DNA from: Orbicella franksi
Lineage: Eukaryota
DNA length: 64,000 nucleotides
NCBI GenBank assembly: GCA_964199315.1
Contig: OZ116706.1
Span: forward strand, 13,578,001-13,642,000
Direction: 5' to 3'
Positions 18,305-21,799 of this stretch are shown here, in pieces; within the stretch, counting starts at the first letter, position 1, and every line of letters starts with the position of its first letter. The notes below the pieces were generated by a model. It saw only the letters and a list, made by a program, of their open reading frames with translations. It made no database searches and had not been told where the DNA came from. A program made the position numbers and the translations under genes.

Positions 18305-18468
18305 TACTACCGAAACAGGTAGACCGCAAATTGAAAGATACGCGTGACAGTTGATTTTGGCACTAAACATCAACGACTTAGGTCACGTGGCTTTGTTTTT
18401 CAAACCAAAAACACGAACTCACATTACTCACGTTACATTCCTAAGAGCGCGATAGAGCGAGTCAAAGA

Positions 18469-19536
18469 ATGGCATTCTCCATAAACAGCAAAGGGCGAAG
18501 TTACTACCGAGGAAAATCAATCGATGAAAGTTTGAGAGGAAGTGTTATCGACTCCATTATGGCAGAAGGCGGAGATCCAGCCTCAGGGTTCTTTCCAGGA
18601 AAGTTTTCCGATGTTGCTAACCGCTTCAGAGTGTCAACTCAATTTGTTTCAAAGTTATGGCAAAATTTGTGTGCTACGGGTGACCATTTCCCTTCGAAGA
18701 AACTATCAGGTAATCCGTCACACCTCAAGCCTGAGGACATAGAACTGATGGAATTTCTCAAACAGGAGAAGCCTTCCCTTCCCTATAAATCGGTTAAAGA
18801 TGTTCTTGAAAACTACAGTACTTTAGAAGGCGGAACGTCCTTGACAGCGATTGGAAATGTTATCAGGAATAAGCTGCCAGAAGGACCTTACACTAGAAAA
18901 CGACTGACGAAGGCATCTGCGGAAAAATTTACCCCTGTGAACACAGTTTACTGTCAACAGTTTCTAAATACTTTGAGTGCTTTGCCACCAGAAAAACTTA
19001 AATTTTTCGATGAGGCTGGCGTTCATAGTGGGACAGGAAACCCCGCTTATGGAAATTCTCTCAAAGGGGAAATAGCGGTTGAAATAATTTCTGGAAATAA
19101 AAAAGGAGCAAATGTAACGCTTAGCTTATTGTGTGGACTGGAAGGAGTACTGTATGCAAACACTGTGGAGGGCACGTCGGATTCTACAAATTTTCTCAAT
19201 TTCTTCGCTGAAGCTGGCCAAGCCACAACTGCACTCGGTAATCCAGCAATTGAATTTGGTGATTATATCATTCTTGACAATTGCGCCACACATCGTTTCG
19301 AGACTGGGGACATTTTGCAAAGATGGCTATTGCACATGGGAGCACAAATCATTTACACTCCATCCCTTTCACCAGAATTCAACGTCACAGAATTCGTTTC
19401 CAATAAATTGAAAACCGTTTTAAAGAAGGAGGAATTTCGATGCCTATTGCGTGAAAACGTTCATGTTGCAATCTTTGAGGCGTTGGAACTCATAACTACT
19501 GAGGACATGTTTGGTTTTTATAGCTTTATCTTGTAG
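18469..19536 (+). CDS. DD37E transposase with paired-like HTH N-terminus, 355 aa
   Basis: Open ORF with FFDEAG (D1), ILDNCATH (D2) and SPEFNVTE (E), 37 residues between D2 and E. N-terminal VANRFRVSTQFVSKLW...TG resembles a paired domain. Confidence 0.93.
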   Translation: MAFSINSKGRSYYRGKSIDESLRGSVIDSIMAEGGDPASGFFPGKFSDVANRFRVSTQFVSKLWQNLCATGDHFPSKKLSGNPSHLKPEDIELMEFLKQEKPSLPYKSVKDVLENYSTLEGGTSLTAIGNVIRNKLPEGPYTRKRLTKASAEKFTPVNTVYCQQFLNTLSALPPEKLKFFDEAGVHSGTGNPAYGNSLKGEIAVEIISGNKKGANVTLSLLCGLEGVLYANTVEGTSDSTNFLNFFAEAGQATTALGNPAIEFGDYIILDNCATHRFETGDILQRWLLHMGAQIIYTPSLSPEFNVTEFVSNKLKTVLKKEEFRCLLRENVHVAIFEALELITTEDMFGFYSFIL

Positions 19537-20094
19537 CTATGTCAGTTAAATTTTATTCGCTGTGTACTGAATCGAATTACCTTGTTAACTAAAGAACCTG
19601 TTGATCTGATATAAAAACAACACAAGTTTTTATTCATTTGTCTGATGAAAGTTTCAGTTTAAATTTACTATTATTGCAGCAAGCATGTCGCGTAAAGTAA
19701 CATTTGTACAAAACTGTAGAACTTCAACAATGGTTAATGTAAGTTACAATTTACGTTTCTTGAACAATATTAAAACTTTCAATGTTTTGTTCTAGTCCAT
19801 TTGTAACTGAGAATCGCTGAAGTGGCAGTGCGTGCATGTTTGTTTACTTTCAGTATTTCGTTATCTTTGTCGGCTGTAGACCTTATAAACAGAAAAATAC
19901 AACATGAAATTACTCTTTTCCAAGGAAAAAATGTTTATCTTTCTTAGTATCGGAATTTTAAACGCATTAACTTAAAAATTTCAAGAGCAGTAAAATATGT
20001 ACTCTTTAAAAGCACAACATGGTTCAAGCAGGTAATTGACAGCCAGACAGTTTGTCCCCTGCTGAATCGCACCGTATTTTGAAATGAAGACTAT

Positions 20095-21605
20095 TTAATT
20101 TGAGCTTAGTTTGGACAAATTTAGTAGAGCATTTGCAGCATCGTTAAGTTCAGTTCGCTCATTGTCATCATTTCCTTCACTCGTGGAAAGTGTCGCTCGG
20201 GTGATAGTTGCGCTGGGTTTAGTTTGCGTACCATGCAAGTACAAGTTGCTTTCCTTCAGTGCAGCGGCCAGTTGCTCCTCTTCGTCTTCGACTGTTAATG
20301 GTTGGAGTTCTGTGCCAGTTGAATAAGATTCGCTAAAAGTAAAGCTAAGCAGCGAGTCTACGGGTTTATATTGCAGAGGTTCAGGGGTTTCTGAAGGCCA
20401 TTTAAAGCCTTTTAATTCCCATAAAGTTCGCACGGGATTTCCTTGGTGTGGCACTTGGTAGCTTTCTAGCATTATCTTCTTGTCATATTCCGTCAGTGCC
20501 TCAAGTAAGCTGACCCCAACTGGGGGAATTTTTCCTTTAAAATGCGATTCAAGTTTCTTTAAATCCTTGTTAACCTGACGCCAGTTTTCAAACCCTTGAG
20601 TATTTAGGTAGCGTGGCTTGCACTCGTTAGTCAATCACGATCACATAAGACTTGAGAATGAGTTTGATGTTTGATTCTTTAGTGCTATCTTCATTGACAA
20701 AGTGTTTTGCAGTTTCTCAAGACCTTTCTTTGCATTGTTCAGTTCGTTAACTGCGCGAGAAACAACATCTTTTTCATCTTTGTGTTTGCTTAAGTCACCA
20801 GAAAATTCTGCTGATTAGCAAGGGTGAGCTTTGTACAGGCAGTTGACACGATTGTGCCTTTCATGCCGATGACAGTTGGTACAAGAAGGTTTCGAATAAT
20901 CGATCCCCGCATGTTTGCCGTATCTAGCCATCAATCGCTGTACTTCCTCTTCTTTTTCTGCCACCTTTTTCCTCTCTTTTTTTACTTCTTGTTTATCTGA
21001 TATGAGGAGATCCAAGGGGGACATATAATGATTTGATCATGGCCCACGATTTAGCGCACTGTTTTCGGGCAAATCGCCTGTTCTAACTCGGCGCTGTTGT
21101 TTTCGAGGTGGAGATAGATAGGTTTTGCTTGTTCCAATGTCAGGAATCAGATCATCTTCAGAAGAGGTGTTGGGTAGAGATTTCGGAGTAGACGAAAGAA
21201 GCAGATGTTTTGAGCAGTTCTCGCCAAATTTGAGTTTTCTCTTCGAATCTCTGTCTGTTGCGCTTCCCTCTCTCATCTGCTGACGCTTCGCGGAAATTAA
21301 CTCAGGTGTTGATTTAGGTTGCCACATGATTTTTATCTTTAAACAGCGAAATGTCATTCCTTGCACTTTGGAAGCACAATGCCAAGCATCATGGAAGGAG
21401 TCTTCGGGCGTATGGTTACCAACATGTTCTCATCATCCATGTACAGTACTCGTAGTTCCGTGTCAGGTATAAACTGTAAACTCTCAGTTTTACCTCTAAT
21501 TACTTGCATGAGATCTTCAAAATTCGGTATTATACTTTCGGTGAAGATGACTTCACACCTGTCGACTCCTTCTGGGATGCTATAAAAAACTTTTAGCTGC
21601 AACAT
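20095..21605 (-). pseudogene. Transposon ORF2 (about 503 aa reconstructed): PB1-like, S/P-rich linker, Cys/His motifs, coiled coil, UIM-like
   Basis: ORF pieces 21354-21605, 21037-21366, 20815-21024 and 20095-20634 join with one frameshift (about 21405) and four in-frame stops (21037, 20815, 20641, 20635). The last three pieces share one frame. Confidence 0.8.
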
Positions 21606-21799
21606 ACTTGTGACCAGAGAAGGAAGAAAAGCAAAAAGGGCAACTATTGCGAATAATTGTAGAGTTCTGGAATGTGGTCACGTGAGTTCATGTTTTTGGT
21701 TTGAAAAACAAAGCCACGTGACCTAAGTCGTTGACGTTTAGCACCAAAATCAACTGTCACGCATATCTTTTAATTCACGGTCTACCTGTTTCGGTAGTA

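Follow-up and report, generated by a model that had tools for sequence, protein, structure and literature searches.

A 64,000-nucleotide (nt) stretch of the Orbicella franksi genome (assembly GCA_964199315.1, contig OZ116706.1, positions 13,578,001 to 13,642,000 of the forward strand; hereafter the window, numbered from its first letter) carries at 18305–21799 what is very probably a dead copy of an autonomous two-gene transposon of the IS630/Tc1/mariner superfamily. It has a DD37E transposase, belongs most probably to the L31 family, and has a second gene, open reading frame 2 (ORF2), that would encode an accessory factor. Tc1/mariner is the textbook transposon that needs a transposase only; the preservation by selection of a second gene in anthozoans and, it seems, in bivalves means that this minimalism is not universal. 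The window copy itself is ordinary and without special importance, and the interest lies in the role of ORF2: at about 3.4 kb, with two short genes, the family is a tractable system for learning what an element gains from an accessory protein. The element is laid out as follows (TIR, terminal inverted repeat; aa, amino acids; protein identifiers such as P0099 denote relatives retrieved in our searches).

18305–21799: whole element including the flanking TA, defined by its TIRs and TA duplication
18305–18306, unstranded: left TA target-site duplication, directly outside the conserved terminus CTACCG; a single-TA empty site restores the flanking ORF
18307–18427, plus strand: left TIR, holding a GTCACGTG motif at 18382–18389
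18469–19536, plus strand: transposase gene, open, 355 aa (DDE_3 match, alignment of relatives)
19537–20094, unstranded: non-coding spacer of 558 nt that separates the convergent genes and has AWTAAA signals on each strand
20095–21605, minus strand: ORF2 pseudogene, equivalent to a 502-aa protein (tblastn of P0099, three-frame translation)
20635–20643, minus strand: two premature TGA stops in ORF2, 20643–20641 and 20637–20635 (three-frame translation)
20815–20817, minus strand: premature TAA stop in ORF2 (three-frame translation)
21037–21039, minus strand: premature TGA stop in ORF2 (three-frame translation)
21402–21408, minus strand: ORF2 frameshift near codon 67 (tblastn frame change at 21405/21408)
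21677–21797, minus strand: right TIR, holding GTCACGTG motifs at 21677–21684 and 21715–21722
21798–21799, unstranded: right TA target-site duplication (empty-site reconstruction)

Comparative analysis indicates that ORF2 was already present in the ancestor of all sampled members, has diverged in step with the transposase and is retained by selection, because the pair is widespread, the two gene trees agree and the ratio of non-synonymous to synonymous divergence (dN/dS, omega) is low. The first-pass annotation had proposed an integral rather than a recently captured ORF2, and had named copies lacking ORF2, single-copy host homologues and neutral evolution as the outcomes that would speak against it; we encountered none of the three. 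Genomic context was collected for homologues of either protein (loci numbered from L001), with enough sequence downstream of ORF2 at 20 loci, and 17 of these 20 carry the convergent transposase–ORF2 pair. Both genes are open and convergent at L001, L002, L005, L007–L012, L013, L019, L030 and L031 (ORF2 about 460–520 aa, transposase about 355–372 aa); the same order, with one or both genes interrupted, partial or separated by an assembly gap, is found at L018, L024, L025, L032 (an Exaiptasia diaphana assembly) and L033 (an Oculina patagonica chromosome). Loci L007–L012 represent six insertions with different flanks, all bearing the same open 519-aa ORF2. The pair extends across four deep clades, Oculina and Exaiptasia assemblies among them, with intact ORF2 proteins of 480–519 aa and ORF2 identity down to 25%. 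Among the exceptions, L003 is decayed and has DNA inserted between the genes.

Maximum-likelihood trees of both proteins, built from ten paired loci, share the clades {L005,(L030,L031)}, {L013,L025} and {L001,L002,(window,(L007,L019))} with mostly high support, except that the transposase tree does not resolve {L013,L025}; branches for ORF2 are 2–4 times longer than those for the transposase. Estimates of omega were restricted to the two closest pairs per gene because dS is saturated in all inter-clade pairs.

ORF2, L001–L002: omega 0.19 (95% bootstrap 0.14–0.25)
ORF2, L007–L015: omega 0.25 (95% bootstrap 0.19–0.34)
Transposase, L001–L002: omega 0.16 (95% bootstrap 0.11–0.23)
Transposase, window–L007: omega 0.10 (95% bootstrap 0.07–0.14)

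Both ORF2 values, with upper limits of 0.25 and 0.34, indicate purifying selection, and synonymous distances are alike for the two genes. By region, omega of ORF2 is 0.05–0.16 in the amino-terminal PB1 domain (described below), 0.13–0.17 in the central domain and 0.38–0.47 in the linker and tail. The spacer is unalignable between the window and L007, L018 or L019, whereas the coding regions align at 73–82%. A search of 1.84 billion proteins returned 33 representatives of ORF2 at E ≤ 0.001, in multi-member clusters; all homologues inspected lie in element contexts, and no solo host-gene homologue appears among the 33 representatives or the inspected loci. Protein searches with the transposase family match cnidarians only, namely Porites, Oculina, Montipora, Paramuricea and coral metagenomes.

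The boundaries of the window copy are those of an IS630/Tc1/mariner insertion, with a TA target site and TIRs. The inverted-repeat arms (18305–18427 and 21677–21799) are 123 nt each including the TA and 92% complementary, with mismatches at 10 of 123 sites, nine of them transitions; a TA-flanked element had been described before with TIRs of 116 bp, a length close to that measured here, and its TA and TIRs are real. The 22-nt element terminus occurs exactly twice in the window (chance expectation 0). Among relatives, the terminus reads TA followed by CTACCGAAACAGGTAGAC in the window, L001 and L002, TA followed by TTACCG in L009, and TA followed by CTACGATT in the distant L005. The element sits within a LINE-like (long interspersed nuclear element) ORF, whose flanks are 17965–18304 and 21800–22058. 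Excision in silico with one TA kept gives a continuous 146-codon frame across the junction (…VFYQNW joined to YDATITKISD…); with no TA kept the frame is 110 codons, and with both kept 102. A 2-bp TA duplication is supported because the single-TA empty site reopens the longest flanking frame. No second copy of the transposase or of ORF2 lies within the window.

The GTCACGTG motif is an E-box-like palindrome that most family members (among them L002, L007, L009–L011, L018, L019 and the distant-clade L025) carry in mirrored placement, about 75 nt in from each end; it may be a candidate site for transposase binding or a promoter.

The transposase, previously read as an open 355-aa DD37E protein, proves to be one by its ORF, its match to Pfam DDE_3 (E 1.5e-13) and its catalytic triad, D181, D270 and E308 (D-88-D-37-E), which is invariant in an alignment of 17 family sequences. 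The spacing of 37 residues between D270 and E308 is free of gaps across the family. Positions 5–138 of the family profile form an N-terminal paired-like bipartite helix-turn-helix (HTH) that matches Pax5, Pax8, Prd and Pax6 (E 1e-8 to 1e-7), and the profile also matches the Sleeping Beauty catalytic domain (E 3.7e-4). Both the RNase-H-fold DDE/D domain and the paired-like HTH expected of IS630/Tc1/mariner are thus present, and the predicted protein has all the hallmarks of a cut-and-paste transposase of the Tc1 type that acts at TA. The window copy carries a private F311S change (codon 19399–19401), three residues past the catalytic Glu, at a position that is Phe in 16 of 16 relatives; the window transposase may be open yet impaired by it.

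Opposite the transposase, ORF2 matches its closest intact relative, P0099, codon for codon over 502 codons at 92–93% identity, in two frames (tblastn). The position of the convergent second gene and its length, earlier put at about 503 reconstructed codons, both hold; in the window copy this gene is no longer intact: one frameshift and a total of four premature stops make it a pseudogene. The symmetric layout claimed from the letters alone (starts about 45 and 75 bp inside the TIRs, a centre of 560 bp) agrees with our measurements: the transposase starts 42 nt and ORF2 72 nt inside their respective TIRs, around the 558-nt spacer, whose AWTAAA signals lie at 19769 on the plus strand and at 19552, 19629 and 20094 on the minus strand. 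In a metatranscriptomic run, contigs of a sister copy cover 18351–19286 and 20040–21663, that is, both genes; the second, which spans ORF2, has one extra G behind 21402 at the site of the window frameshift.

The broken ORF2 means that the window copy is non-autonomous. Other members of the family are intact, but the sequence of this copy marks it as an ageing, decayed insertion: it lacks ORF2 function, has probably lost full transposase activity too, and could at best be mobile via proteins from intact sister copies. Its identity is 96% to L015 and L016, two copies from coral metagenomes, and 98.9% to L021. We considered whether the open transposase marks an active copy and rejected this, given the broken ORF2, the 10 of 123 TIR-arm differences and the replaced F311. 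Three of the four premature ORF2 stops are TGA and several TIR-arm mismatches are paired CA/TG; the observed/expected CpG ratio is 0.86 in the element and 0.65 across the whole window. The pattern of stops and mismatches would be consistent with decay at methylated CpGs, several on opposite strands.

The domain description of the ORF2 protein is the part of this analysis most likely to be new. The intact proteins P0099, P0100 and P0092 score 28–30.5 bits against PB1 (PF00564; gathering cutoff 23.6), and the window fragment scores only 15.2 bits. In an AlphaFold model built from a 23-sequence alignment, residues 1–100 are predicted at a pLDDT (predicted local distance difference test) of about 90, with Foldseek matches to the PB1 domains of p40phox, Par6 and NBR1; a PB1 cluster in the ESM Atlas superimposes on this N-terminus with a template-modelling (TM) score of 0.80 and a root-mean-square deviation (rmsd) of 1.8. 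An acidic YxDDE (OPCA-like) cluster (Y55, D57, D58 and E59) is nearly invariant in the alignment and the beta-1 lysine (QLKVFY) is present in most sequences; PB1–PB1 pairing uses these two surfaces, and ORF2 may pair through them. Residues 114–190 are predicted to form a disordered, basic linker. Residues 188–405, modelled separately (pLDDT 84), fold into a long hairpin of antiparallel helices, and a compact helical domain follows. At the hairpin tip sits a Cys/His cluster (C241, C244, H245, H250, C255, C262, C268 and H274) that is invariant or nearly so, and the compact domain has invariant Y332, W341 and N345. An acidic run then precedes a conserved segment, L-A-x-[AG]-[LI]-x-E-S, that resembles a ubiquitin-interacting motif (UIM), and the C-terminus is a conserved amphipathic helix (DAAxALxNL). 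The PB1 domain, the conserved Cys/His cluster and the helices are confirmed; the UIM is unconfirmed. ORF2 matches neither a CCHC zinc knuckle or ZZ finger nor a UIM profile, and ESM Atlas searches with ORF2 return weak PB1/ZZ neighbours or none.

The family's functional unit would be a convergent gene pair in which the start of either gene lies immediately internal to a TIR and transcription is presumably driven from the adjacent element end. The transposase would excise the element and reinsert it at TA. ORF2 would act in trans as a non-catalytic accessory factor: it may self-associate or dock on host partners via PB1, its zinc module may bind DNA, RNA or protein, and the protein could help the transposase to assemble, to localise to the nucleus, or to persist and stay stable on the element ends.

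Two established eukaryotic systems offer models for such an arrangement. In MuDR of maize, the mudrA transposase gene and mudrB start at opposite ends, immediately internal to long TIRs, and converge on a short intergenic stretch; the likeness lies in this convergent two-gene layout and in a second protein that is not a transposase, whereas MuDR belongs to a different superfamily (Mutator/MULE), makes 9-bp duplications and encodes a MURB without similarity to ORF2. PIF/Harbinger elements encode a Myb-like ORF1 protein, non-catalytic, that is needed for transposase localisation and end binding, and as a second element-encoded protein in a eukaryotic cut-and-paste element it is a model for the role of ORF2; the superfamily, the target-site duplication (TAA/TTA) and the accessory fold (Myb/SANT versus PB1 plus zinc cluster) differ. 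Nearer relatives are the ciliate elements Tec and TBE, which group near DD37E(L31) (PMC7325037). Like the window family, they belong to the Tc1/mariner group and have additional ORFs, one on the complementary strand, but they differ by their DD34E triad, three ORFs (encoding a recombinase or zinc-finger protein), ciliate hosts and, in Tec, much longer TIRs. At the protein level, p62/SQSTM1, NBR1, p40phox, Par6 and Cdc24 have the PB1 beta-grasp fold, acidic cluster and beta-1 lysine in common with ORF2; unlike these scaffold proteins, the rest of ORF2 has no ZZ, UBA, PX or PDZ domain or known fold match. A literature search for PB1-bearing transposon proteins found none.

Membership of L31 is probable. 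The DD37E spacing, the TA duplication and the TIRs are common to L31 and the window family. In AlphaFold DB, ORF2 finds its best match in K1R3J8 (query residues 2–425 of 502, E 1e-18, with 28% identity over the central domain), which from its accession series we take to be a Pacific oyster protein; a weaker match is A0A6J8BFW9, perhaps a mussel protein, its organism likewise being our assumption. Homology to a bivalve ORF2 is drawn solely from the K1R3J8 match and its presumed organism. Later papers by Puzakov and Puzakova are said to describe ORF2 as integral to nearly all full-length bivalve and hexacoral L31 elements, with function unknown. We find the family in Exaiptasia, Oculina, Porites and Montipora, and the L31 host list includes Exaiptasia and Acropora. 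Among named DD37E families, L31 is the one whose founding element is Mariner-31_CGi, from the Pacific oyster (PMC7325037, bioRxiv 10.1101/656579; Puzakov et al. 2018 as cited), with hosts given as six bivalves, a nematode, Exaiptasia (three sequences) and Acropora (one) (PMC7325037, supplement 1). A literature search found L31 named as a DD37E family in PMC7325037 and bioRxiv 10.1101/656579, with no description of an ORF2 found, and Mariner-31_CGi in PMC7325037 only.

Two alternatives concern the origin of the second gene. Most Tc1/mariner elements encode a transposase only and the window ORF2 is a pseudogene, as would be expected if ORF2 were a recently captured (transduplicated) host gene fragment with no role in the element; we regard this as extremely improbable, given a pair that spans four deep clades with ORF2 identity as low as 25%, congruent gene trees, an omega of 0.19–0.25 and the absence of a solo host homologue among the representatives and inspected loci. 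That the family is a separate cnidarian DD37E lineage, outside L31, which acquired its second gene independently, is a reading we consider distinctly unlikely, and it has more to recommend it: all named transposase and ORF2 matches are cnidarian. The best structural match to ORF2, K1R3J8, is probably from oyster (E 1e-18), with A0A6J8BFW9 a weaker lead, and this points back towards L31. The known DD37E groups that are unrelated to one another number at least four (bioRxiv 10.1101/656579), which would leave room for a further lineage, but Exaiptasia and Acropora stand beside six bivalves among the DD37E(L31) hosts (PMC7325037) and the pair is present in Exaiptasia.

What ORF2 does for the element is a different matter. 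Instead of being a cofactor, an integral ORF2 may counter silencing or serve as a regulator through which the element limits itself, for example by PB1-driven sequestration of the transposase or by p62/NBR1-like engagement of host ubiquitin or selective autophagy. This is a minority possibility that we nevertheless take seriously: the layout of PB1, zinc module, coiled coil and ubiquitin-motif-like segment resembles p62/NBR1, the PB1 of NBR1 is among the fold matches, the neighbours of ORF2 by language model are of the PB1+ZZ type, at the weak score of 0.63, and selection at the level of the element would keep a regulator as well as a cofactor. Its appeal is reduced by the lack of any ZZ, UBA or LIR match, by the failure of Pfam to recognise the UIM-like motif, and by atlas scores under the level counted as evidence. 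A cofactor is the role we prefer for ORF2, while a regulator or a host-ubiquitin/autophagy factor would fit the selection data equally. It is somewhat more doubtful that, among metazoan Tc1/mariner elements, ORF2 would be the first accessory protein with a defined function, in the form of a PB1-driven, zinc- and ubiquitin-binding scaffold, its central fold without a solved relative, that builds or protects the transpososome or taps host ubiquitin and autophagy.

Several observations weigh against an autonomous two-gene L31 transposon with an accessory ORF2. At L029 ORF2 is truncated and the transposase absent, and at L027 weak matches to the transposase (1645–2709, minus strand) and ORF2 (3870–4355, plus strand) are divergent, which could reflect two adjacent elements or a rearranged variant. 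Purifying selection tells us that ORF2 matters to the element, yet is silent on whether it promotes or restrains transposition. Five ORF2 segments, the UIM-like one included, have no Pfam match up to E 10; the zinc segment (P0099:225–285) has no Pfam match either, and P0085 gives only a sub-threshold PHD-like one. Matches of the central domain in the PDB (Foldseek, VIA-align) are generic coiled-coil hairpins only and were rejected as uninformative. Transcription of the family is only weakly supported, because the metatranscriptome contigs may stem from DNA carry-over; among polyA RNA runs, X24 gives about 1x coverage and X22 and X23 have zero reads on the element. The assignment to L31 is based on the spacing of the DD37E triad, on the range of hosts and on what the L31 papers are said to describe.

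Related copies from other assemblies also stand beside further mobile-element genes, at L001 (140–1747, minus strand) and L003 (1701–4316, minus strand), where a RecQ-like helicase ORF, Helitron_like_N and rve/RVT are found; this suggests that the neighbourhoods of related copies are rich in transposable elements. Coral annotations list parts of the element as Pax, ankyrin or hypothetical genes, and recognising the pair would clean up such annotations. An Exaiptasia gene model (L032 6001–9694, LJWW01000278.1) spans ORF2 plus the opposite-strand transposase, a transposase homologue of Paramuricea is annotated as 'Ankyrin repeat domain-containing 34B', and 'Paired box Pax-8' is the name given to a protein that resembles ORF2; entries with mislabelled element parts include P0049 and A0A7D9DCU9.

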